Sequence record: NC_061441.1
Length of the DNA stretch: 64,000 bases
Direction: 5' to 3' (one strand)
The stretch's first letter is position 1. Each line of letters begins with the position of its first letter. The translations under genes and the position numbers were made by a program. Shown one piece after another: positions 9,979 through 31,805 of this stretch. The notes beneath the pieces are model-generated. The model ran no database searches and was not told the origin of the DNA. It worked only from the letters and a program-made list of their open reading frames with translations.

Positions 9979-10509
9979 ATGACGGAAAAGATTGAACAGT
10001 TGGCGAAGTGGTATGACGCGGCAAAGACCGCGTTTAAGATGGGCACTCTCAATCCTAACGGTAACATTGCGTTGCTGTTGAGTATTCTGGCCCGTCTGAA
10101 TAAGTCAGTAGACGAAGCCGCTCCTGGTCCTGTGCGTGATCGGGCAGAAAAGGAACGTGCTGAGTTTCTTGACGAGCTGGCCGGTGAGGTCGATATGTAC
10201 GCTCTCATCCGCAAGCGCTTCAACAACGATCTGTACCCAGGCATTACTGTGAGCGAAGACGTGAAGGTGTATGTTGCCCTCATGGCTGATCGCCCAGGCA
10301 GTGCTGTAATGGCGATGACCTTCCTGCACCTTGCTCGTTGCTACACGCTCAAGGACATGATCATTAACTTTCTCCCGAACGGCTTCCCGGCTGAGGACGC
10401 ACTTGGCCTCACTTGGAGCATACAGAAGACAGACACTGGAAACCTGGTGGATGATATTGATTCTGTAAATAGCCTGTACAACAAGATGTATAACTCTGGA
10501 GATAAGTAA
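9979..10509 (+). CDS. hypothetical protein
   Basis: ORF with GAGG RBS. Confidence 0.65.
   Translation: MTEKIEQLAKWYDAAKTAFKMGTLNPNGNIALLLSILARLNKSVDEAAPGPVRDRAEKERAEFLDELAGEVDMYALIRKRFNNDLYPGITVSEDVKVYVALMADRPGSAVMAMTFLHLARCYTLKDMIINFLPNGFPAEDALGLTWSIQKTDTGNLVDDIDSVNSLYNKMYNSGDK
10463..10471 (+). promoter_or_regulatory. CTGTAAATA candidate promoter motif
   Basis: Exact copy 38 nt before the start at 10509. Confidence 0.45.
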
Positions 10510-11102
10510 TGGATTTATCTGCATTAGGTTACGCACCGAAGCAGTTCCGAGTAATCCCCGTTGAGAAGGGCAACCTCGTGACTGACTTCATTCAAGGTAA
10601 GTTCCGCGTTATCGGCGTTGAGTGCAACGCTCGTGGTGCTTACGGAAGCCCGATTCAAAAGAGTATTGCCCGTCGTTTCCCTGAAGTCGTGAACCGCGTC
10701 AACGCCGTTGATTACGAACACGAATTAACAATCGGTAAGACGCATTTGGTTCGCGTTCGCACACAAGCCCGTCGTGATTTGTTTGTTGCTAACATGCACA
10801 TTGCGCGTGGCTTTGGTCTGGGTCTGAATGGTTCGTCTGAGGGTCATCATAAGCCCGTTAACCGTTTCAGTGAAAAGTTCCTGACGCGAGCGTTTGAACA
10901 TCTGCTGGAGCAGTGCGATAAAGAAAACATCGCACCAGACCGACAGATTGCTATTCAGCGTTTCTATGGCGGACTCGGCGGAGTTTCTTGGGAAGAGGTT
11001 TGTGTTGTGCTCGATGCTATCTGTGAGAAGCACCAGTTCAACATGTACGCCTACTTGCCAAAGAACTACAATACTAACTATGTGCGGGGTTCCGCGCAAT
11101 AA
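10509..11102 (+). CDS. macrodomain-like protein (Appr-1-p processing / TARG1-like fold)
   Basis: KGNLVTD, ECNARGAYGSPIQKSIARRFP, FVANM and GGLGGVSWEEV segments match phage macrodomains. Confidence 0.65.
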   Translation: MDLSALGYAPKQFRVIPVEKGNLVTDFIQGKFRVIGVECNARGAYGSPIQKSIARRFPEVVNRVNAVDYEHELTIGKTHLVRVRTQARRDLFVANMHIARGFGLGLNGSSEGHHKPVNRFSEKFLTRAFEHLLEQCDKENIAPDRQIAIQRFYGGLGGVSWEEVCVVLDAICEKHQFNMYAYLPKNYNTNYVRGSAQ

Positions 11103-11114
11103 CTTTGGGGTGTA

Positions 11115-11450
11115 TTGATGAACACAATACGCGGATTTGATTGGCTCTTTTACGGAGATGGAACCGATAGTGGCCAACACTCAATTGTAAGTCTTGTTGT
11201 CGATCAGACAGCAAAATCAATACAGGTAGAAGTAGAGCCAGGATGCGCCGTGCCTGTAATTCAAGCGATTCAGGAAAATGACGTCCTGTACGCTCAGGCC
11301 GAAGCTGGCCTCTATCGTATTCGTTACAGTTGCTCATTCCGAACGTTGGATGCTAACGTCTTCCCGCCCACCAAGACTAACTTCCAGTTGAAGTTGATCG
11401 CGTGTGACTTCCTTGCGGGTGTTACTACTCACGATAAACTTCTGGACTAA
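11115..11450 (+). CDS. hypothetical protein
   Basis: ORF in operon. Confidence 0.55.
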   Translation: MMNTIRGFDWLFYGDGTDSGQHSIVSLVVDQTAKSIQVEVEPGCAVPVIQAIQENDVLYAQAEAGLYRIRYSCSFRTLDANVFPPTKTNFQLKLIACDFLAGVTTHDKLLD

Positions 11451-11455
11451 GCACT

Positions 11456-12214
11456 ATGATTACAGTAAAGAATATTGAACTGCGTTTGAAAAGAATAGAC
11501 TATACTCGGCCTTCACCGACCCGTGAACGGCTTGAGGAACTTGTGGCTGATGGACGTTCACGTATCTTGAAGGCGGCGCAGATTGATGGACTGTGTCCTG
11601 AATCTGATCGTTACTTTGAGTTCTGCCTGTCGCAAGTTGGTTCATTCTGCACTGCATCATACAACGCTGTGGAGATCGCTCTCTGCATCGGCTTGCAACC
11701 TATCCACGTTGCTGCCGCTATCAGCGTTCACGGTTTCGAATGGTCGCATCGTCTTCTTGGTTTGAAGCGATTCGCTGCCCTCGATCGCGGTAGCTTTACC
11801 GTCTGGAAATCTGCTGACGCTTGGTTCTCGTTGGGTGAGGCGCAACGCCGCGCAGCGAACGTGTACGGTGACCAAACTATTTCTGTCGGGCAGTCTAAGT
11901 TGCGTCAGGCGATACGCACCAGTAACATGGACGTCATTCGTCAGATTGCACAAGCACATCCGCATCGCGTGATGAGTGTGCTTGCTCCTCGACATGCACT
12001 GTATACTGATCCTCGTGCAGAGAAAGCTCGGCGCGAACGTGAAGCCAAGAAAAAAGAACTGGCTGCCGAAGGTAAGAAGTTAGCTGAACGCGGTTCGTAC
12101 AACGATCTTGGTACTGTATTCAACGGGCCAATTACCAAACCAGATCGCACTCGTGGTATTGATGATTCTTCTCAAACACGAAGTACGGTTAGTGGTCGTC
12201 GTTTTCGTGTCTGA
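11456..12214 (+). CDS. hypothetical protein
   Basis: 252 aa ORF in operon. Confidence 0.6.
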   Translation: MITVKNIELRLKRIDYTRPSPTRERLEELVADGRSRILKAAQIDGLCPESDRYFEFCLSQVGSFCTASYNAVEIALCIGLQPIHVAAAISVHGFEWSHRLLGLKRFAALDRGSFTVWKSADAWFSLGEAQRRAANVYGDQTISVGQSKLRQAIRTSNMDVIRQIAQAHPHRVMSVLAPRHALYTDPRAEKARREREAKKKELAAEGKKLAERGSYNDLGTVFNGPITKPDRTRGIDDSSQTRSTVSGRRFRV

Positions 12215-12266
12215 AAAACAGATAACGGTAATTTCGACAGGTCAAAACAAATAACGGAACACTATC

Positions 12267-13037
12267 ATGAGCAACGTTGATAAAACAATGCCACAAGGTC
12301 GCTGGGAATTTAACGAACCAGTTGCTGCTGTCTTCGATAACATGTTGCAAAACTCCATTCCTTCGTATGACCGTATGCGTGACCTGACCTATCGTCTTGG
12401 TCGCCAGTTCGTAACTCCAGGTACGGCCATCGTTGATTTGGGCGCATCGCTTGGTCGCGCTATCGAACCATTCTGCGCTGAGTTCGGCGAGTACCATTAT
12501 ATTCATGCTGCTGACCGCCCTGAGCCAGATCGTGAAATCGGCAATCACTACTGCTGCTACGAAGTCGCACCGGCAATGCTTGAGCGTCTTCGTCAAAACG
12601 AAGTGCTGGTCAACGCCAAAGCAAAAATCAGTAGTGATTCGCTGGTTGAAGTCGATACTTTCCGCTTCGACGAGCAGGTTGAGTGCTCCCTGATTCTGAG
12701 TGTGCTGACTCTCCAGTTCACTCCTATCGAACACCGCCAACACATTCTGGAGAAAGTGTACGACTCTCTGGAGAAAGGCGGTGCTTTCATTCTGGTTGAG
12801 AAAGTGTTGGGTGACGACAACTTCCTTGACCGTTTGCTGGTAGACACCTACTACGGCATGAAGGGCGATAACGGTTACTCGCAAGAATCTATTGCGACTA
12901 AGCGCAAAGCTCTCGAAGGCGTACTGGTGCCTGTGAAAGCTGCATGGAACGAAGAACTGCTGCGTAAAGCAGGCTTCAACCGTGTGGAGTGTTTCTACCG
13001 CGACCTGAACTTTGCTGGATGGATCGCAGTCAAATAA
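12267..13037 (+). CDS. cmoA: carboxy-S-adenosyl-L-methionine synthase (CmoA-like)
   Basis: WEFNEPVAAVFDNMLQNSIPSY, VDLGASLG, LTLQF, EK, NGYS..SIATKRKALE (Arg equivalent to E. coli CmoA R199), AGF..NF; collinear with CmoA over its full length. Confidence 0.9.
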   Translation: MSNVDKTMPQGRWEFNEPVAAVFDNMLQNSIPSYDRMRDLTYRLGRQFVTPGTAIVDLGASLGRAIEPFCAEFGEYHYIHAADRPEPDREIGNHYCCYEVAPAMLERLRQNEVLVNAKAKISSDSLVEVDTFRFDEQVECSLILSVLTLQFTPIEHRQHILEKVYDSLEKGGAFILVEKVLGDDNFLDRLLVDTYYGMKGDNGYSQESIATKRKALEGVLVPVKAAWNEELLRKAGFNRVECFYRDLNFAGWIAVK

Positions 13038-13048
13038 GGTAAAACGAA

Positions 13049-14095
13049 ATGAGCGTAAGTGGTGATATTTATAACATCCCTCAACCGTTCGCCATATATT
13101 GTGGCAACTGTGAAACTCGTGCTCAGGCAAAAGTTGCCTCAGGCACAATCGAATGGGCGTCAGAGAAAGTCTGCTGCGTTGTTGCCGACGATAACGGCCT
13201 GTTCCCTGATGTGCCTCACGTCAACATCGCAAGCGTCCATGCCACAGATGCACGTACTCTGGTAATTGGCTGTGCACCGTTCGGCGGTAAGATTGACGAG
13301 CACATGGACCGCACTATTCGCAGTGCTATCTATCGTGGTCTGAACGTTGCTGCCGCGATGCACAATCGTCTGGCAGATAATCCTGAATACGTTGCGCTGG
13401 CCGAACAGTATAACGTCAAGCTGTATGACTTCCGTCATCGTCCTGACGCGTACCCTCTCGGTACTGGTGAGAAGCGCAGAGGCATTCGTCTGCTGACTGT
13501 AGGTACCGATAGCTCTTGCGGTAAGAAGTTCACGACGCTGACGCTGCACCGCATCCTGAAAGAGATTCACGAAGACACCGTGTTCTGTTCAACTGGCCAG
13601 ACTGGTTTCCTGATCAGCAACTGTGGTATCAACAACGATACGCTGGTGGCTGATTTCCTTGCTGGCGCTGCTGAGTCTTTATCTCCCGATGGTCCTGATG
13701 ATCGTATCTATCTGATTGAAGGCCAGGGTGCTATTACTCACCCAGCGTATACTGGTGGCAGCATGAGCCTGATTGCTGGCTCGCAGCCTGACTACTTCAT
13801 CATGTGCCATGCGTGGGGACGTAAGAATCAGCTCGGTGTTAAACGCGCACCTGACCTTGCTTTTGAACTAAAGGCCAATCTGGACGCAGCGGCCATTCAC
13901 GGTCTTACTCCTAAGTATCTAGGCATCAGTATCAACTTCTCCGAGAGTGGCCTGACCATCGAAGAACAAGACGCTGAGATGTGCGCCCTGGAGGACCTGT
14001 ACGATATTCCAGTGTTCGACCCGTCGCGTGATCGTATCGTCATCAAAGAGATGGCACATCATCTCAAGACGACTGTAATATTCAGGGGCAAGTAA
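13049..14095 (+). CDS. DUF1611 family protein (DgcN-like, P-loop C-terminal domain)
   Basis: LVIGCAPFGG, AAMHNRLADNPE, GTDSSCGKK, STGQTGFLI, DFLAGAAE, IEGQGAITHPAY. Confidence 0.85.
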   Translation: MSVSGDIYNIPQPFAIYCGNCETRAQAKVASGTIEWASEKVCCVVADDNGLFPDVPHVNIASVHATDARTLVIGCAPFGGKIDEHMDRTIRSAIYRGLNVAAAMHNRLADNPEYVALAEQYNVKLYDFRHRPDAYPLGTGEKRRGIRLLTVGTDSSCGKKFTTLTLHRILKEIHEDTVFCSTGQTGFLISNCGINNDTLVADFLAGAAESLSPDGPDDRIYLIEGQGAITHPAYTGGSMSLIAGSQPDYFIMCHAWGRKNQLGVKRAPDLAFELKANLDAAAIHGLTPKYLGISINFSESGLTIEEQDAEMCALEDLYDIPVFDPSRDRIVIKEMAHHLKTTVIFRGK

Positions 14096-14096
14096 C

Positions 14097-14966
14097 ATGG
14101 CTAAACATCCTCTTCGCAAGCTGTTTGAACAGCACGTAAAGAAAGAGGTCAAAGCCAAAGAAGTGGCCGTTCTGCTTTCGAGCGGCCTCGATGGTTTGGT
14201 TAGCGCACTCGCGGCGCACGATCTCGGCATGAAGGTACATGCCTTTACTTTTCAGATGGGCGACGACCAGAGCTTCGACAGCAAACACGCTGCAATCGTA
14301 GCCCAGAAAATGGGCTGGGAGTTCACGCTCGTTAAGGTGCCAGACTCTGATAGTGCAATCGCCAAAGGCTGGAAGACGTTGCACAAGAATTTCCGCTGCA
14401 TCAAAAAGCGTGATTACGAGTGTGCGTACCCTATGGTGTACTGCTACAAAGCGATCAAAGATGCAGGCTTGAAATACGTGCTTAGTGGTCTGGTGGCTGA
14501 CGGTTACTTCCTGTATAACCGAAACACGCACATTCAGAAAGTAAGCGGCCCGCACTCTATCGCTGAAAAGTATCACGCGTACCGCACCGAATACTTCCGA
14601 CCGTGGATCAAAAGCGGTAAGAAGTCGCTCGGCGTTGACGGCTATAACCCGAGCGGTATGCTGCAACACGAATTGCTGTGTGACCACTTCGGCCTTGTTC
14701 ACGTTAACCCGTGGATGCAGCCGAAAGTATTTGATTACTTCATCAAGTACACATGGCAAGAGTTAAATATGCCTAAGCAGAAAATGCCAATAACAACGGC
14801 TTGGGCAGATCACATCGCAGTTGTTGGACATCGTCCACATCGCGGCTATCAAACAGAAGCTGGAGTGCCTGCGCACTTCGAACGCTTACTGGATAATCCT
14901 GAGATCAACTTCAACGGCCGCAAGCGCATCATGGACGTGGCCCGCGATTGGTCAACGAGGACTTAA
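14097..14966 (+). CDS. asparagine-synthetase-like ATP-dependent amide ligase, synthetase domain only (CmoY-like candidate)
   Basis: PP-loop VAVLLSSGLDG, HAFTF, DSKHAAIVAQKMG, VLSGLVADGYF; no N-terminal Ntn glutaminase domain. Confidence 0.75.
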   Translation: MAKHPLRKLFEQHVKKEVKAKEVAVLLSSGLDGLVSALAAHDLGMKVHAFTFQMGDDQSFDSKHAAIVAQKMGWEFTLVKVPDSDSAIAKGWKTLHKNFRCIKKRDYECAYPMVYCYKAIKDAGLKYVLSGLVADGYFLYNRNTHIQKVSGPHSIAEKYHAYRTEYFRPWIKSGKKSLGVDGYNPSGMLQHELLCDHFGLVHVNPWMQPKVFDYFIKYTWQELNMPKQKMPITTAWADHIAVVGHRPHRGYQTEAGVPAHFERLLDNPEINFNGRKRIMDVARDWSTRT

Positions 14967-14967
14967 T

Positions 14968-15582
14968 ATGTTTGTACACATCATTGACGGTGGTATTGGT
15001 GGGTCTTATGTTGCTCACCAGTTAATGGAAGCTGGGTTTAAATGTCGCGTTCACTCTCCGAATAACAATCGTGTTCGGGCAGTACATGCGCCATACCCTT
15101 CGCTTTCTATGGGTCACACTGAACAGGAAATTGAAAAGCATATCGGTAACGTGCTTGGTACGTTTCGCGGTCTGTTCCTGATCAGTAGCTACGTTGGTTC
15201 GTTAATTGCAAATCAGATGATCGATCAATGCGGTCAGAGTGGAAACATCATCACCTGTGACGATCTCAAGTGTGGTTCAATACCTGTTGTTGCTTCATCC
15301 ATTTCTGTAAACGTCTATAAGAAGCAAAGACAACTGGCACGTATCTCGCATCGCTTGAAACACTTCGACATTGACCACGAGTTTATTGTCGCTGATAAGG
15401 CTGTGCGTTTTGCTGCTGGTTCGGAGTATGATGAGCACGATGCTCGAAAGGAGTTTAACAACAACGCCAAATTCCTTTCAAGTCCGTCAATGATTGTTGC
15501 TGCACACAAACTCGGTGTGAAGAACAGTATGTACCACAACTATGCGGGACTGGTGCGCGAGTTTCTTGAGAAGCGCCAGTAG
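14968..15582 (+). CDS. hypothetical protein, possible remote Asp/Glu racemase fold
   Basis: ATG after GAGG RBS; IIDGGIGGSYV resembles MurI FDSGVGGxSV; catalytic Cys positions appear to be Ser; fold call is weak. Confidence 0.55.
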   Translation: MFVHIIDGGIGGSYVAHQLMEAGFKCRVHSPNNNRVRAVHAPYPSLSMGHTEQEIEKHIGNVLGTFRGLFLISSYVGSLIANQMIDQCGQSGNIITCDDLKCGSIPVVASSISVNVYKKQRQLARISHRLKHFDIDHEFIVADKAVRFAAGSEYDEHDARKEFNNNAKFLSSPSMIVAAHKLGVKNSMYHNYAGLVREFLEKRQ

Positions 15583-15600
15583 CAGTAACGCGAGGGCACG

Positions 15601-15864
15601 ATGATTAATCGCTTTCAATTGAAGAAAGTTCCGACGCTCGAAGCGTGTCAATGGAACGGGGAGAACGTCGAGGAGATGCAGAAGTTCATCGACGGTCACG
15701 GATATGTTGTTGGGCGTTATGTCCAGATTGGTGTGCTCGATGAATATCGCAAGCCGTCTATTGCTAACGTGTCTGTAGGCAACTACGCAGTTAAGCACGA
15801 AGACGGTCGGTTCGATGCGATGACAGCAAGCGAACTGATGGACAAATACGTTCTGGCGGATTGA
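15601..15864 (+). CDS. conserved phage hypothetical protein
   Basis: EACQWNGEN...GNYAVKHEDGRF pattern common in phage small proteins. Confidence 0.65.
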   Translation: MINRFQLKKVPTLEACQWNGENVEEMQKFIDGHGYVVGRYVQIGVLDEYRKPSIANVSVGNYAVKHEDGRFDAMTASELMDKYVLAD

Positions 15865-15871
15865 GGGCATA

Positions 15872-16327
15872 ATGAATCTGTTTTCTATTTTAAAGCAACA
15901 GGTAAAGAAAGCGCTGTCCACCGAAGCGAATCACGAACCAGAGATTCGTGCGTTGTTCGACTGGCGCTACTCTGTTGAGATCAAAGGCCAGATGTACATT
16001 GTAGGTAAGACTGGAGCAAACACTTGCTTCTATGTTGAGCCTGGTACTGACGAGCCGATTGCGTGTTACCCTGACGCGCTGCTGGAGAAGATTGACCAGT
16101 GGGGCGGAAGCAAGTACGTGTCGTATTCGATCTTCTTTAAACGCTTCGATAGCCCTGTCGCCGAGAACATCAAAACTCTCGAAAAGGCAATGAGCGGTAA
16201 GCCTAAGTCGTACAAGAAAGGCTACTTCATCTGTGGCGTGACGCCGAAAGGTAAGCGTGTGAAACTCTATCGCTTGCAGCAAGGTCTGTCGGGTATGCAG
16301 TGGGTAGCTGTCGAACCTAAATCGTAA
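15872..16327 (+). CDS. hypothetical protein
   Basis: ORF with GAGG RBS. Confidence 0.65.
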   Translation: MNLFSILKQQVKKALSTEANHEPEIRALFDWRYSVEIKGQMYIVGKTGANTCFYVEPGTDEPIACYPDALLEKIDQWGGSKYVSYSIFFKRFDSPVAENIKTLEKAMSGKPKSYKKGYFICGVTPKGKRVKLYRLQQGLSGMQWVAVEPKS

Positions 16328-16357
16328 CAGCACGGCCTGTCCGTGTGAGGAGCAAAT

Positions 16358-16645
16358 ATGATTGACGACATTATTATTGGTCACATCTATCAGTCATCGA
16401 ATGGTCATCCATATAAAGTGGAAGGCCGCGCCGAACACGGGCAAAACCCAGAAGACAAGTGGGTACAACTCCATAACCTGACTCAAACTCCTTTGTATGC
16501 CAAAGGCCATAAGTTCAGTATGCGAGAGTCCGTGTTCAAGGAAGTTTTCTCTGTGTATACAGAAGGAGAGTACCATGAACACAACGTTAAGGCATCATCT
16601 GAAATGCCGCCACTTCGATCCTTCATTCTACCATTGTTGGCTTAG
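16358..16645 (+). CDS. DUF1653-like small beta-barrel protein
   Basis: IGHIYQSSNGHPYKV..AEH..V....F.MRES.F pattern. Confidence 0.55.
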   Translation: MIDDIIIGHIYQSSNGHPYKVEGRAEHGQNPEDKWVQLHNLTQTPLYAKGHKFSMRESVFKEVFSVYTEGEYHEHNVKASSEMPPLRSFILPLLA

Positions 16646-17088
16646 CGATACGCAAATGACCGTGCCCTTGTTTGGCTTTGATCGAGCAATGCGTGGTCTA
16701 CAGGTCTACACACCAGATGCACCAAAGCACGATAAGAACCCGAAAGCGTGTCGTTACTTCACGCGAGCGTTCGGTGGCAAGCAGTTGGTGTGGGGATCGG
16801 AAATTAAACCTGAACGGGTCGACCGTCTTCTTAACTGAGTCTGTTTTCAAGGCATGTGCGCTGCATCGTCTTGGACTCAATGCTTGGTCCGTTCTCGGGT
16901 CTAATGTGAGTGAGCATCTGTACCACCAGCTTCGACTTCTTGGTCTACGTTTCGTCTGTCTTGGTGACAACGATAAAGCAGGACTGGAGTTTAGTCAGAC
17001 GTTCGGACTAGGCGCGGTCAGTGCGGATCTTGATGAGATGACTGATGAGCAGTTGCTTGATTTAACTTTACCCTTCGTAAGGAAATAG
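16575..17088 (+). pseudogene. small Toprim (primase-like) gene split by a frameshift near 16800
   Basis: Strong RBS and ATG at 16575; frame 1 ends at TGA 16838; Toprim motifs FLTES and LGDNDKAG lie in the +1 frame, which has no good start of its own. Confidence 0.65.
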
Positions 17089-17090
17089 AA

Positions 17091-17519
17091 ATGTCACGCG
17101 AAGTTATCGTCCGTATCTTAGGCCCTGTTGGTGCTGGCAAGTCTGCTGTGTATGCAACTCTGGTCAAAGCGCTGACTCAAATCGGTGTTGACGTCAAACA
17201 TGCCGATGAGAAAGCGTGGAAGTCTCTGGAGAACGCAGGCGAAGTTGCGCTGTCTACCGAAACGCTGAACGAACTCACACCTGTTGTGACGTTTGAAGAA
17301 GCTGGTATTCGCACTGATGCGTCCGCAAGCCAGAACTCTATCATGCAGTTCTTTGCTTATGCGCATCTTCCGCCGCACCTGCAAGCTGTGAGCAAACCGT
17401 TCGCTCTGCTGGCTCAAGAGATGGACCAGAACCTTCCACAAGGTCCTGAGAAGTCTGCCGGTCTGCGCAAGCTGCTTGAAGCGAAAGACTGCATGGTTCG
17501 CCAGCTCGTTTCCAAATGA
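17091..17519 (+). CDS. two-part protein: N-terminal Walker A-like segment plus conserved phage helical-hairpin domain
   Basis: GPVGAGKS; C-terminal QFFAYAHLPPHLQAVSKPF...GPEKSAGLRKLLEAKDC. Confidence 0.7.
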   Translation: MSREVIVRILGPVGAGKSAVYATLVKALTQIGVDVKHADEKAWKSLENAGEVALSTETLNELTPVVTFEEAGIRTDASASQNSIMQFFAYAHLPPHLQAVSKPFALLAQEMDQNLPQGPEKSAGLRKLLEAKDCMVRQLVSK

Positions 17520-17839
17520 GTCTCGATCTCTTAGTGCCGCCTATCGGTCTGGAGCGCATTGAGTATCGTAACTACAACTACGACAATGTTAGCCTCAACA
17601 TTTTGAACATCATTAGCGTAGTGCCGAGCGCATTCAAGTCATATCCTGATAATGAAGGCACTCCGTCTATTGCATTCGAAATACGCGGGCGAGAGAAGCC
17701 TGTCCACTGGATTATCCCTAAAGGGAAGTACGGTGCGAACGCTACGGCGTTGCGGGACAGACTACTCCATCGTTTGCAGACAGGTGGCTATTCGCATTTG
17801 GTGGCTGCTGACGAACTGATCGCTGACTTACAGAAATAA
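17516..17839 (+). CDS. hypothetical protein
   Basis: ATGA-coupled ORF ending before a terminator. Confidence 0.6.
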   Translation: MSLDLLVPPIGLERIEYRNYNYDNVSLNILNIISVVPSAFKSYPDNEGTPSIAFEIRGREKPVHWIIPKGKYGANATALRDRLLHRLQTGGYSHLVAADELIADLQK

Positions 17840-17842
17840 CCC

Positions 17843-17870
17843 AAGGGTGGCCATTAGGCTGCCCTTTTCT
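17843..17870 (+). terminator. rho-independent terminator
   Basis: AAGGGTGGCC-ATTA-GGCTGCCCTT followed by TTCT. Confidence 0.75.
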
Positions 17871-17993
17871 GATCTTAGACAACTAAAACAAGCCCATAAG
17901 GACAGAGTAGAACCGTGCGTAAAGCGTATAAAACCATGTGTAGGCAGCGTAGAAACACCACCTTTTTCTTGAGCAGTGGGAAGCGCTTAAAAA

Positions 17994-18002
17994 CTGTAAA
18001 TA
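17994..18002 (+). promoter_or_regulatory. CTGTAAATA candidate promoter motif
   Basis: Intergenic, downstream of a terminator, just before the RBS of the Dam-like gene. Confidence 0.55.
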
Positions 18003-18020
18003 CTGATAAAGGAGAGAAAA

Positions 18021-18863
18021 ATGACAGTAATCAGCCCAATCCGATATCAGGGCAATAAGCGAAGCCTTATCCCGATTATTCTTGAGCACACGCCTTCTGT
18101 GCAGGACTGCCCTCGCATGGTGGACGTGTTTGGTGGTAGTGCTACTGTTTGCGCGAACATGCCGCAGAAGTTTCGCGTCTACAATGAACTGAGTCCTCAG
18201 GTGTACGATATCGTTAAGATGTTAGTCGAACAGGACCCGAAGAAAACTCTTGGTCAGGTCAAGCGACTGGTCAAACATTGGTGCCTGACTAACAGCAACG
18301 AAGCGAACTACGATGCGTTTCGGACCGTCGTTCAGAGGAAGCGTACGGCTATACTGCATTACGTTGCACATCGCCACGCACACTCGAACATGTTGCGCTT
18401 CAATCAACAAGGTGTGTACAACGTAGGCTTTGGTGATCGTGGCCTGATTGGAAAGTTCGATGAGCTGGAGCACGAACTCACTACATTCCACAAGCACATG
18501 CAGGGCGTTCACCTGACGAACATGAAGTACGGCAAACTGCTTGGTCGCTTAGGCCACCAGCTAGACTGTAACACGTTCTGCTACTTCGACCCTCCGTATT
18601 TAGCGAGCGGTGCGATGCAGTACGGTAAGTGGACCGAGCAGAATGAACGCAACCTGCTTACGACTCTGGAGCAGTTGAATCGTCGCGGCGTTCCCTGGAT
18701 GTTGAGCAACGTTATCGAGCACCGTGAGTTCTCCAACGACCTGTTAAAGCGTTGGCTAAAGAAACATGCGACAACCGTGCTCTATCCAAACAAAAGCTAT
18801 GCGATGAACAATGGCCAGAGCGGCTCGCATAGCACGATTGAAATTCTGGCAATGAACTATTGA
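18021..18863 (+). CDS. Dam-like (D12 class) N6-adenine DNA methyltransferase
   Basis: SPIRYQGNK, DVFGGSATV, YFDPPY. Confidence 0.88.
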   Translation: MTVISPIRYQGNKRSLIPIILEHTPSVQDCPRMVDVFGGSATVCANMPQKFRVYNELSPQVYDIVKMLVEQDPKKTLGQVKRLVKHWCLTNSNEANYDAFRTVVQRKRTAILHYVAHRHAHSNMLRFNQQGVYNVGFGDRGLIGKFDELEHELTTFHKHMQGVHLTNMKYGKLLGRLGHQLDCNTFCYFDPPYLASGAMQYGKWTEQNERNLLTTLEQLNRRGVPWMLSNVIEHREFSNDLLKRWLKKHATTVLYPNKSYAMNNGQSGSHSTIEILAMNY

Positions 18864-20731: not shown

Positions 20732-21237
20732 CCGAACTACCAATGTCTGCGGAGCAGGCCGAACACATCATGGCGAGTGTGTTTACTCTGGCCGGTGCTT
20801 CTAAATCCAAGCGTCGTGCGACTGCTGCAATGCTCATTCATTTTCATGACGGCTTCCCTACTATTATCAGTAGCGGTGTCAACGGTACTATGCCAGGCGA
20901 AAGCAACGTCATGGAAACTCCTGACCTGACTCTCTCGCTCAACACTGTTATCCATGCAGAGGTGAACTGCCTCAATCGCATGGAAGAATACAGTCTGTGG
21001 GCAAACGAACAGGACATTCTGTTCTGCACTGATTCGCCGTGTCCTAACTGCTTGGCGGATCTCGAAGCCGAAGGTGTGAAGACCGTTGTGTATGCGCGTG
21101 AGTATCGCCTGACTGATCATCTGGACGCATCTTCGATTAAGATGTTCTGTCTGGATATGAAGTCCGTTGAGCACCGTATGCTTCGCGGTATCGAGCGCAT
21201 GAACGAAGTTATCGCAACAACACCAGCGTCTGAATAA
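20716..21237 (+). CDS. dCMP deaminase-like zinc deaminase
   Basis: SGVNG, HAEVN and SPCPNC motifs. Confidence 0.85.
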   Translation: MRCNLTELPMSAEQAEHIMASVFTLAGASKSKRRATAAMLIHFHDGFPTIISSGVNGTMPGESNVMETPDLTLSLNTVIHAEVNCLNRMEEYSLWANEQDILFCTDSPCPNCLADLEAEGVKTVVYAREYRLTDHLDASSIKMFCLDMKSVEHRMLRGIERMNEVIATTPASE

Positions 21238-28975: not shown

Positions 28976-29674
28976 ATGGCAAAAATTGCTAAAACAAAGG
29001 AAGGGAAAAAGAAAAGCGCGATGAAGTTTGACTTGAAAACGCTCAAGACTTCACAACTGAAAGGCGCTGACTACAACCCTCGTTTCATTACAGACAGCCG
29101 CCTGAAAGCACTCGAAAGTTCTTTGGGTAGCTTCGGCGATCTGTCTGGCATCGTCTTCAACAACAGTGTCAAAAGCGGCGTATTGATCTCTGGTCACCAG
29201 CGTCTGAAATCCATCGACGGATGGAAGACTCGCATTGAGATTCAGAAAGCCGCCGACCAACACGGTACTGTAGCTCTGGGTTATATCCACGCTACGCACC
29301 CGAAGAAAGCCGAGAAGGTCATCAGCATCCCGTTGCGTATCGTTAACTGGACTGATAAGAAAGCTGAGTACGCTGCGAACATCGCGGCGAACGCCCACGG
29401 TGGTGAGTTCGATAACAAGAAACTCGCCAAGCTGGTGGAGAAGCTGGACTTGACCACCATCAAGCCTCAGTTGCTGGGTCTTGACCCACTTGAGATTCGC
29501 GGCCTTCAACAAAAGCTGAAAGGTCAGGCTGCGGTTGTAGCTCAAGAGCGTGTCGGTAAAACTACAGGCCAGATGAACGGTAGTAGCGGTGCGTTCAAAG
29601 AGTATGGTACGGACGAAGTAGGTGAGAGTCTGAACTGCACCTGCCCGCGCTGTGGATTTAAGTTCGAGGGATAA
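28976..29674 (+). CDS. ParB/sulfiredoxin-like N-terminal domain protein with C-terminal zinc ribbon
   Basis: LKGADYNPR, ISGHQRLK, ANAHGGEFD, CPRCG. Confidence 0.85.
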   Translation: MAKIAKTKEGKKKSAMKFDLKTLKTSQLKGADYNPRFITDSRLKALESSLGSFGDLSGIVFNNSVKSGVLISGHQRLKSIDGWKTRIEIQKAADQHGTVALGYIHATHPKKAEKVISIPLRIVNWTDKKAEYAANIAANAHGGEFDNKKLAKLVEKLDLTTIKPQLLGLDPLEIRGLQQKLKGQAAVVAQERVGKTTGQMNGSSGAFKEYGTDEVGESLNCTCPRCGFKFEG

Positions 29675-29675
29675 T

Positions 29676-31805
29676 ATGATCATCAAGCCGCCTACTATGA
29701 AGGAAATCAACAAGCTGGATAAACCCTGGCGTGGTATGAGTTTCTTCGCAGGTTGCGGTGGATCTTCTACCGGTCACAAGATGGCCGGTATCAACATCCT
29801 GTTGAGTAACGAGTTCGTGGATAGTGCCCGCGAGTCTTACGAAGCAAACCATCCGACTACTAAAGTGCTGCCGCATGATATTCGTCGTCTGGACCCAAGC
29901 AAGCTCATGCGTTATTGCGGCTTGGCGAAAGGCGAACTGGATTTACTTGACGGCAGTCCTCCGTGCTTCACCGAAGACACCATCATTCATACAGCAGACG
30001 GCATGAAGTTCATCTCGGACATGAATGTCGGCGATCAAGCAATGACCTCTGTTGGTCGTTACTTCCCTGTGTACGATACTATGGTTCGTCCGTACGTCGG
30101 CACGATGCACAAAATCGAAACTCTGCTGGGCGCAAACAACGCTACACCAGAGCATCCGTTCTTTGTCAGACGCAGCATTCCTACTGGCGGTTACACTGAC
30201 CCGTTCTGGTGTGATGCGAAAGACGTTCAGGAAGGTGATCTGTTAGGTAGCCCACGCACTACGCCTGACATGGGACTCGACGTGTATCAGTCGCAACTCG
30301 ATCAGCTGCCGAAGCAGATTGCAGAGTGGAGCACATTCCCTGAGTTCTGGTGGATGGTTGGACACTGGTGTGATCGCGGTTCGATTGAAACCGTGAGTGG
30401 TGTTGAAGTCGTTAGCTTTGAATCTCACTCAAGCCTCGAAAATGCAATGATTGAGCAGGCGTTTGACGCGCTGAAAATCAGCAGCCTGAACCGTATCGAC
30501 ACGATGACAGCACAACGCAAAACGTTCCGTATCGTTATGGACGCAGAGCTGGTGCAGTTCTTACGTCGATTCGTATCTCAGGGTAACAACAAGTTCTCTC
30601 GTCGTCTGCCTGCGATTGTCTTCCACCTGACAGTCGAGTTGAAGCAACAATTCATTCTCGGTTGTGCTGGTCATGACTATGTGACTGGTATGGGTACCGG
30701 CTTGGCGATCACCTCAGATAGCCGTCGCTTCCTGATTGAGTTGAACTACCTGTGCTGTTCTGCATTCAACAGACCGCTGTTCGATGGTCTGACTTGGGGC
30801 GACGTTTACTTCGGCAGCCCGATGACTCCGCGTGATCGTAACAGTGCTAAGCCTCTCATTGGCTTCCTGTTCCTGCAGGACGAGCACAACTTCTTCCACG
30901 AGTTCGATGACGCTGACCCGCATTTGTGGGTAGAAGTGATTGAGAACCTCGCGTATCAGGCAACCTGTGACGTGTATAACTTCTCCGTTGAGACGGACGA
31001 GACATACGTTGCAAACAGCATGGTCGTTCACAACTGCAAAGGCTTCTCTACTGCTGGTGTGAAGGAAGAAGGCTGGGGCAAGGAAGTTAAATACAGCGAC
31101 AACAAGTATCAGCAGGTAGATGACCTGTTCGATCAGTATTGTCGTATGCTGGAAGGCATGAAGCCGAAGGTGTTCACTGCGGAAAACGTGAGCGGCCTTG
31201 TGAAGGGCGCATCGAAAGGTTACTTCCTTGAAATCATGAAGGAGTTCGACCGAATCGGTTATTACGTCCGGGCACCGATGCTTAATGCCGCATGGCTGGG
31301 TGTGCCGCAATCGCGTGAGCGTATAATCTTCATGGGTGTACGCAAAGACGTTGCACACGCACTTGGTTACAAGACCGCTGCGACCGCTGTGCCGAATGTT
31401 GTTCCGTGTGACAGCATGGCGTTCCTTGCCGATGCTCTGCCGCACATCCTGCGCTACAAGTCCACGAAGAAAGATATCATCACCTATCTTCCTGCGATGA
31501 ACGGACCGATGCCTACGATTACTGCTGCCGATGCGATTGCATATGAGACTGCGCGTTTCTCGTCTGCGGGATTCGTCGAGGACAACAAAGGTCATCGCCG
31601 TAAACTGACTATCGACGAACTCAAAGTGATATCGGGTTTGCCCTCAGACTACAAACTGAAAGGCAAATTCGAAGAACAGTGGGAACGTCTTGGTCGTATC
31701 TGTGTGCCTGCAATGACACACGCTGCGGCTAAAGCGCTCATCGAACACGTCCTGATTCCTTACGCGAAGAAACGTAAGAAGAAGCCAGGCGATATCTTTA
31801 AGTAA
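29676..31805 (+). CDS. C5-cytosine DNA methyltransferase homolog, predicted carboxymethyltransferase (CmoX-like), intein-containing; about 352 aa after splicing
   Basis: Motif I FFAGCGG, IV GSPP-C-KGFS after splicing, VI ENVSG, VIII QSRER; motif X reads LGRICVP instead of GN(A/S)V. Confidence 0.88.
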   Translation: MIIKPPTMKEINKLDKPWRGMSFFAGCGGSSTGHKMAGINILLSNEFVDSARESYEANHPTTKVLPHDIRRLDPSKLMRYCGLAKGELDLLDGSPPCFTEDTIIHTADGMKFISDMNVGDQAMTSVGRYFPVYDTMVRPYVGTMHKIETLLGANNATPEHPFFVRRSIPTGGYTDPFWCDAKDVQEGDLLGSPRTTPDMGLDVYQSQLDQLPKQIAEWSTFPEFWWMVGHWCDRGSIETVSGVEVVSFESHSSLENAMIEQAFDALKISSLNRIDTMTAQRKTFRIVMDAELVQFLRRFVSQGNNKFSRRLPAIVFHLTVELKQQFILGCAGHDYVTGMGTGLAITSDSRRFLIELNYLCCSAFNRPLFDGLTWGDVYFGSPMTPRDRNSAKPLIGFLFLQDEHNFFHEFDDADPHLWVEVIENLAYQATCDVYNFSVETDETYVANSMVVHNCKGFSTAGVKEEGWGKEVKYSDNKYQQVDDLFDQYCRMLEGMKPKVFTAENVSGLVKGASKGYFLEIMKEFDRIGYYVRAPMLNAAWLGVPQSRERIIFMGVRKDVAHALGYKTAATAVPNVVPCDSMAFLADALPHILRYKSTKKDIITYLPAMNGPMPTITAADAIAYETARFSSAGFVEDNKGHRRKLTIDELKVISGLPSDYKLKGKFEEQWERLGRICVPAMTHAAAKALIEHVLIPYAKKRKKKPGDIFK
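29964..31034 (+). mobile_element. intein (357 aa) with degenerate LAGLIDADG region, inserted directly before the catalytic Cys
   Basis: Starts C-FTEDT, block B ATPEHPF, block F VYNFSVETDETYVAN, ends VHN followed by +1 Cys. Confidence 0.92.

Follow-up and report, generated by a model that had tools for sequence, protein, structure and literature searches.

Here we describe two adjacent genes, gp017 and gp018, of an Alexandravirus, the Erwinia amylovora jumbo phage pEa_SNUABM_16 (NC_061441.1). Of its genome (~266 kb), we analysed bases 1–64000 (the window). We consider it probable (roughly 0.75) that gp018 (MPK64_gp018) is a CmoY-type, ATP-dependent amide ligase that acts on phage DNA and is coupled to gp017, the product of which belongs to the DUF1611 family. 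The genes of this region lie on the + strand and are tightly packed, and positions 12000–16000 are 100% identical in pEa_SNUABM_18.

A pathway of this kind has been described in the Synechococcus phage S-B43 (Yang et al., Nat Commun 2025, PMC12783734). There, CmoA produces carboxy-S-adenosylmethionine (carboxy-SAM), and CmoX carboxymethylates cytosine at GC sites in DNA; this enzyme is homologous to C5-methyltransferases, has an SPPC motif and bears Arg350 where Asn is usual. SpCmoY, an asparagine-synthetase homologue made up of the ATP-binding domain alone, then ligates glycine to 5-carboxymethylcytosine (5cxmC) in DNA in an ATP-dependent manner. The same study associated ParBc proteins with CmoX, and its survey counted 2,251 associated ligases, which fall into several clusters and in some cases include a glutaminase domain; ammonia use was assigned to a different cluster, one that retains this domain (PMC12783734). 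Neither DUF1611 nor Erwinia phages are mentioned in that paper or its supplements.

Judged by homology, the window encodes every component of the published system, in two sub-clusters 15 kb apart. The gp018 protein aligns with SpCmoY (UniProt A0A514ABJ0) at 33% identity (BLASTP, residues 14–287 vs 10–263, E = 3e-50). The cmoA gene, gp016, lies 1 kb upstream of gp018; its product matches the CmoA model TIGR00740 (E = 9.6e-43; 146.6 bits, under the equivalog cut-off of 193.3), its best PDB matches are all CmoA (4GEK, 4IWN, 1IM8; E = 1e-30), and its identity to the assayed SpCmoA is 30% (E = 4e-29). The decisive test for the published system is a CmoX encoded in the phage genome, and a candidate is found downstream of gp018 in gp047, which matches Pfam DNA_methylase (E = 1.6e-38) as well as Hint/Intein families, with SpCmoX (8YF3, E = 8e-54) as its top PDB match and M.HaeIII at 1.5e-17. 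It carries GSPPC, ENV and ERLGR motifs, and its R674 aligns with R350 of SpCmoX, the Arg that binds the carboxylate of carboxy-SAM, at a position occupied by Asn in ordinary C5-methyltransferases; the identity of R350 is fixed by the R350N primer given in PMC12783734. Directly before gp047 lies the ParB-like gp046, homologues of which (38–47% identical) are found directly upstream of CmoX in the metagenomic loci L009, L032, L035 and L037. That DNA is the substrate is supported by metagenomic proteins that join a CmoY-like domain, in both orders, to a C5-methyltransferase domain (P0106, P0108, P0115, P0160, P0150).

The SPPC motif of gp047 is complete only once predicted protein splicing has occurred, as the gene carries an intein. 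The junctions, marked here by slashes, read GSPP/CFTEDT...TPEHP...VVHN/CKGFSTAG, compared with GSPPCKGFSTAG in an intein-less CmoX homologue (metagenomic L009:860-2044). Cys97 of the intein follows GSPP, a Block-B-like TPEHP and a terminal VVHN are present, and splicing with Cys454 as the +1 residue would restore the PPC-KGFSTAG motif. The intein is kept in 46 of 46 related Erwinia and Dickeya phage records, and its position just before the CmoX catalytic cysteine implies a DNA modification that depends on protein splicing. A sub-threshold Intein_splicing match (residues 226–405, E = 5e-5) was also seen in gp004, an unusually long terminase large subunit that may likewise contain an intein.

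Turning to gp018 itself, Pfam Asn_synthase (PF00733) covers residues 6–138 from profile position 2 (E = 3.4e-13), with weaker PP-loop matches to QueC and NAD-synthase. With NCBIfam TIGR01536 (517 positions), the alignment begins only at model position 235, after the glutaminase half, and the score is 55.4 bits (cut-off 267.1); the AsnB model NF006949 scores 28.7 bits (cut-off 499). A PDB search with the gp018 sequence alone gave chance matches only and a fold search was needed: the whole AlphaFold2 model (predicted local distance difference test, pLDDT, 93.4) superposes on the C-terminal synthetase domain of Escherichia coli AsnB (1CT9) with a template-modelling score (TMq) of 0.65–0.70, a range shared by human ASNS, beta-lactam synthetase and carbapenam synthetase, at only 18% identity to AsnB. 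No glutaminase domain was found by Pfam or NCBIfam in gp018 or in neighbouring gene products; gp018 starts 26 residues ahead of its PP-loop, which leaves no room for a Cys-Ntn glutaminase, and the gene upstream encodes the DUF1611 protein, not a glutaminase. Residues S28, G30 and D32 of the loop are invariant across the ligase family. The ratio of nonsynonymous to synonymous substitution rates (dN/dS) is 0.055–0.10 for gp018 against four orthologues and 0.04–0.10 for gp016, and gp016, gp017 and gp018 are all under purifying selection; gp018 is a real gene under constraint.

These results bear on a first-pass annotation of the same stretch, which had described gp018 as an AsnB-type PP-loop synthetase domain lacking a glutaminase. 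Pfam, the TIGR01536 coverage and the fold all agree with that description. The annotation had gone on to propose that the ligase takes an external amine and acts on DNA-bound carboxymethylcytosine; homology to the glycine-ligating SpCmoY, cmoA and cmoX in the window and the C5-methyltransferase fusions support this proposal. It had also placed the ligase gene next to cmoA, which is indeed nearby but not directly adjacent, as gp017 sits between the two. The idea is not new, and matches the system published in December 2025; what the published account does not include is gp017.

The product of gp017 matches the DgcN model NF041892 (E = 2.7e-83; 279.6 bits, under the cut-off of 480), which makes it a member of the family and not demonstrably the same enzyme. 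Its best PDB sequence match is 7XRJ (residues 10–328, E = 2.5e-52), which is also the top Foldseek match of its AlphaFold2 model (pLDDT 82; E = 1.2e-29, 34% identity) and is titled 'N-acetyltransferase DgcN' in the PDB. A preprint cites 7XRJ, with reference to Yu et al. 2023, as the D-glutamate acetyltransferase, and Enzyme Commission (EC) entries, as quoted in PMC11747546, give DgcN as D-glutamate N-acetyltransferase (EC 2.3.1.312). Of 58 residues that do not vary among six divergent phage proteins of the DUF1611 family, about 49 recur in DgcN (alignment read by eye), including GTDxxxGK (the P-loop), TGQTG, EGQG, QPD and several arginines. Judging by these residues, the phage DUF1611 proteins look catalytically competent.

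The association of this gene with the ligase is strict. Only 1 nucleotide (nt) separates the end of gp017 from the gp018 start codon, and a DUF1611 gene lies immediately upstream of the ligase, often overlapping it, in 12 of 12 sequence-distinct gp018-clade lineages with upstream context (the Alexandraviruses; L005/L006/L041; L007/L008; L009/L010; L020; L021; L022; L033/L034; L035; L036; L037; L042). In L020 it consists of a 192-amino-acid (aa) C-terminal fragment only, with a 229-nt gap to the ligase. Searched in the reverse direction, DUF1611 is directly followed by a CmoY-like gene at all 12 of its loci in viral contigs (12/12, from 3 independent lineages); at L032, the ligase so paired belongs to the other half of the family tree. 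Four unrelated contigs hold ParB-like, CmoX, CmoA, DUF1611 and CmoY genes in compact operons. The order is ParB-like, CmoX, CmoA, a 405-aa protein, DUF1611, an Alr-like protein and CmoY in L009; ParB-like, CmoX, a 100-aa gene, CmoA, DUF1611 and CmoY in L035; and ParB-like, CmoX, DUF1611, CmoY and CmoA in both L032 and L037. Pseudomonas phage PaBG encodes a ParB-like protein, a cytosine methylase, CmoA, a 150-aa gene and an asparagine-synthase homologue, with no DUF1611. In the IMG/VR contigs L033/L034 (6822–10045), two tandem DUF1611 paralogues precede the CmoY-like gene and a thymidylate-synthase-like gene is nearby, with no cmoA or cmoX within 8 kb; this arrangement may be a variant pathway.

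The tree of the ligase family was built from 155 of the 1452 cluster representatives found by profile search for the stand-alone ligases (the alignment used for remote searches excludes two rows from GenBank loci). The gp018 protein is placed in a clade of 25 rows (support 94; 97 for the inner clade of 24) that is distinct from the SpCmoY clade, both lying inside one 75-row group with 99% support. The SSGxD[GSA] form of the PP-loop occurs in gp018 and in 19 of the remaining 24 rows in this clade, which is further marked by Arg105 (Thr in the SpCmoY clade) beside an invariant C-x-K-K...E-C block, by Tyr251 (Leu in the SpCmoY clade), and by two insertions, around residues 149–154 and 170–183. 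The basic residues K104, R163, K229 and H248 are common to both clades. A metagenome scan for further members of the gp018 clade yielded 3 loci; the non-clade ligases P0029 and P0035 sit on ~1 kb contigs and are uninformative about neighbours. In sum, gp018 is a CmoY-family member in a distinct, DUF1611-coupled clade.

The two genes occupy a slot in which close relatives differ. DNA homology to related phages breaks off with the stop codon of cmoA (13037) and picks up again where gp019 starts, at 14977 in SNUABM_2 and 14980 in Y3. Comparison of the slot (13038–14976) with L003, L004, L015 and L043 reveals at least five cassettes in phages that are otherwise collinear, and the slot is a recombination hot-spot. 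The DUF1611 gene with a clade-A ligase occurs in this window and in Alexandra, Dickeya phage AD1, SNUABM_22 and SNUABM_33. The SNUABM_7 group has a 420-aa protein, DUF1611 and a ligase; SNUABM_1, _3, _17 and others have these together with an alanine-racemase-like pyridoxal-phosphate (PLP) protein between DUF1611 and the ligase. SNUABM_2 and its relatives carry a single, different ligase, from the other half of the family tree, and phage Y3 has a further different ligase, matching only about a third of gp018 (E = 5e-4), with a 49-aa open reading frame and an annotated oxygenase. The 405–420-aa protein (L009:2802-4019, L005:3694-4950, L004:2774-4036) matches nothing in Pfam, NCBIfam or PHROG. 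In ESM Atlas language-model features (0.99) and in predicted structure (TM 0.76–0.79) it resembles GT-B (GT4) glycosyltransferases, a modelling lead to a possible GT-B glycosyltransferase that hints at a glycosylated modification in sister phages. A search for repeats flanking the cassette gave short, chance-level matches only, and promoter and terminator counts across 10000–18500 were within shuffle expectation, so that no operon boundaries can be called. At the downstream edge, gp019 starts 1 nt after the gp018 stop codon and has homologues 75–99% identical downstream of three cassette types; it has no family match, apart from a weak alpha/beta-hydrolase lead, and could be a further pathway component.

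Table 1. Features of the 64000-nt window that are discussed in the text.
Feature	Position	Strand	Basis
gp004, terminase large subunit, 942 aa	2540–5368		
gp016, CmoA-like carboxy-SAM synthase, putative carboxymethyl donor	12267–13037	+	TIGR00740, PDB, SpCmoA homology
gp017, DUF1611/DgcN-like putative acyl-CoA-dependent N-acyltransferase	13049–14095	+	Pfam DUF1611_N and DUF1611, DgcN similarity
gp018, putative CmoY-type ligase, 289 aa	14097–14966	+	Pfam, NCBIfam, SpCmoY homology, fold
PP-loop variant LSSGLDG, gp018 residues 27–33 (canonical, SGGxDS)	14175–14195	+	Read from sequence
gp019, conserved, downstream edge of cassette, pathway membership uncertain	14968–15582	+	Homologues, DNA homology
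gp026, D12-class N6-adenine DNA methyltransferase	18021–18863		
gp031, dCMP deaminase	20743–21237		
gp042, thymidylate synthase homologue, 365 aa	25916–27013		
gp046, ParB-like, accompanies CmoX	28976–29674	+	phrog_620, E = 1e-32
gp047, putative CmoX-type DNA cytosine-C5 carboxymethyltransferase precursor, 709 aa, intein-bearing	29676–31805	+	Pfam, PDB, motifs
Intein, 357 aa, gp047 residues 97–453, between Pro96 and catalytic Cys454 (motif IV)	29964–31034	+	Sequence vs intein-less homologue

We propose a pathway that would run from gp016 through gp047 to gp018, as suggested by the assayed homologues in S-B43, by motifs and by gene context. Carboxy-SAM would be made by gp016; the intein would be spliced out of gp047, rebuilding its PPC catalytic motif, and the spliced enzyme, probably assisted by gp046, would then place a carboxymethyl group on cytosine C5 in double-stranded phage DNA. 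The PP-loop of gp018 would adenylate the 5cxmC carboxylate, and attack by an amine would yield an amide. With neither a glutaminase domain nor a glutaminase subunit to supply it, this amine should be a free metabolite and, judging from SpCmoY, is most likely an amino acid, not ammonia. Three roles can be envisaged for gp017: it might prepare the amine, for instance through N-acylation of a D- or diamino acid at one of its amino groups; it might N-acylate the appended group on DNA after ligation; or it might be the amine-transferring partner of the adenylating ligase. Both its role and the identity of the amine are inferred. The likely purpose of the modification is protection of phage DNA from host nucleases.

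The DgcN-like partner, together with the racemase-like and glycosyltransferase-like genes of sister phages, suggests an appended group more elaborate than glycine, and the end product is probably a cytosine hypermodification other than 5-glycyl-cxmC (5gcxmC). The appended group may derive from a D-amino or diamino acid, with N-acylation preceding or following ligation; as the cassette in this window holds no racemase-like gene, any D-amino acid would presumably be drawn from the host pool. A broader reading, which we put forward tentatively and at somewhat short of even odds, is that gp017 and gp018 jointly make an undescribed hypermodification, that sister phages elaborate it, and that the slot serves to diversify DNA decoration. 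The product would then be 5cxmC amide-linked to a D- or diamino acid, the second nitrogen of which would be N-acylated by the DgcN-like enzyme; alternatively, this enzyme would transfer an amine onto the ligase-activated carboxyl. Sister phages would add the GT-B-like protein and the PLP racemase-like enzyme, and Y3 its annotated oxygenase.

Several observations weigh against a DNA-directed ligase coupled to gp017. The PP-loop of gp018, SSGLDG, is two positions off SGGxDS, and cmoX is 15 kb from gp018 rather than in one operon with it. For the DUF1611–ligase pairs of L005, L007, L021, L022, L033 and L036, no cmoA or cmoX was found within the 4.6–17 kb fetched, and some of these pairs sit among nucleotide-metabolism genes; they might serve another carboxylate, or cmoA and cmoX might be located on other parts of these contigs. 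The amino group that DgcN acetylates is an alpha one, and an amino acid ligated through that very amine offers none, which complicates the logic of the gp017–gp018 coupling. Lastly, we found no DNA modification data for Alexandraviruses; public sequencing runs consist of assembled contigs and Illumina metagenomes only, which are blind to base modification.

Of the other ways to read gp018, one is that it acts just as SpCmoY does, joining glycine to 5cxmC to give 5gcxmC, with gp017 uninvolved and perhaps manipulating host D-amino-acid metabolism. Common membership of the two clades in the 75-row group speaks for this, as do the four shared basic residues, which could bind an alpha-carboxylate. 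Yet the strict adjacency of DUF1611, its translational coupling and its place inside cmoX-cmoA-cmoY operons would be hard to explain, the clade-specific R105 and Y251 (Thr and Leu in the SpCmoY clade) and the two insertions set gp018 apart, and relatives exchange the whole gp017–gp018 block for one different ligase; we regard this reading as unlikely. Use of free ammonia, which would make gp018 a glutaminase-less amidotransferase producing 5-carbamoylmethylcytosine, is improbable. The lack of a glutaminase in gp018 would fit, and AsnB-family synthetase domains can use free ammonia, but such a product would leave nothing for gp017 and the racemase-like and glycosyltransferase-like proteins to act on; moreover, the sole assayed glutaminase-less member of the family uses glycine, ammonia being assigned to the glutaminase-retaining cluster (PMC12783734).

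The carboxylate might also lie off DNA, gp018 adenylating a small molecule (e.g. N-acetyl-D-glutamate from gp017) or the cmo5U of tRNA and giving rise to a metabolite, a modified RNA, or an acyl group destined for an amine elsewhere. The resemblance of gp017 to an enzyme that makes N-acetyl-D-glutamate points this way, as do the DUF1611–ligase pairs beside nucleotide-metabolism genes with no cmoA or cmoX in the fetched flanks, and RefSeq labels gp016 a tRNA methyltransferase. Full-length homology of gp018 to a DNA-acting enzyme, the fusions to DNA C5-methyltransferase domains within its family, and the inclusion of CmoX in the four compact operons all argue the other way. A tRNA scan of the 64-kb window found none, which weakens the tRNA reading, and no CmoB homologue was noticed, although none was specifically searched for. 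On balance we find an off-DNA carboxylate quite improbable. The Pfam family name of gp018 and its two loop substitutions might suggest either an ordinary asparagine synthetase that depends on ammonia or a relic left inactive by decay of its PP-loop. Both are hardly credible given scores far under the TIGR01536 and NF006949 cut-offs and the low identity to AsnB on the one hand, and dN/dS values and clade-wide conservation of the variant loop, which argue against decay, on the other. A ligase acting on 5cxmC in phage DNA, coupled to gp017, remains the reading we prefer.

A few kilobases downstream of the cassette lie the D12-class methyltransferase gene gp026, which means that the phage probably has adenine methylation besides cytosine modification, and the dCMP deaminase gene gp031. 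The thymidylate synthase homologue gp042 has ~100 aa of insertions relative to ThyA and keeps the catalytic PPCH; it was considered as a dCMP hydroxymethylase competing for C5 and ruled out, as the dUMP-type PFN Asn is kept.

The CmoA–CmoX–CmoY system has been described for one cyanophage, with glycine as the sole known appended group, and is here extended by homology to cultured Erwinia and Dickeya jumbo phages. Beyond PMC12783734, our analysis adds a recurrent fourth enzyme, the DgcN-like DUF1611 protein. If the broader reading holds, the cmoA–gp019 slot is a 'chemistry cassette' that evolves fast and lends different DNA decorations to jumbo phages that are otherwise near-identical. Cassette swaps at one locus offer a natural series for the discovery of new DNA bases and their enzymes, and amide-forming DNA-tailoring enzymes are of interest as tools for site-directed DNA functionalisation.

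Compared with its closest described relative, gp018 resembles SpCmoY in being a stand-alone AsnB-type synthetase domain of about 270–290 aa with no glutaminase and with CmoA and CmoX co-encoded. The PP-loop is SGGVDS in SpCmoY and SSGLDG in gp018; S-B43 lacks a DgcN-like gene, whereas one precedes gp018; the cmoX gene that would serve gp018 is distant and contains an intein; and glycine is the amine of SpCmoY, while that of gp018 is probably a different one. As for gp017, it shares the two-domain DUF1611 architecture of DgcN and differs in its setting, a phage DNA-modification cassette rather than a D-glutamate catabolic cluster with the DgcA racemase. With AsnB, beta-lactam synthetase and carbapenam synthetase (1CT9, 1MC1, 1Q19), gp018 shares the fold and the PP-loop and, presumably, a chemistry of carboxylate adenylation followed by nitrogen attack. 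It differs from them in having no Ntn glutaminase domain, active or vestigial, in an identity of only 13–19%, and in its proposed substrate, a modified DNA base in place of aspartate or a beta-amino acid. The Glu of the AsnB motif SGEGADE would correspond to Leu in gp018 (SGLVADG). A wider parallel is found in the hydroxymethyl-pyrimidine systems, such as the glucosyl-hydroxymethylcytosine of T4 and the amino-acid-derived thymidine hypermodifications of ViI, M6 and SP10, in which a C5 handle is likewise installed and then variably tailored, the tailoring genes being swapped among related phages. In the pathway proposed here, the handle would instead be a carboxylate, derived from carboxy-SAM and put on DNA after replication, and its tailoring would proceed by ATP-dependent amide formation rather than by glycosylation or pyrophosphate displacement.

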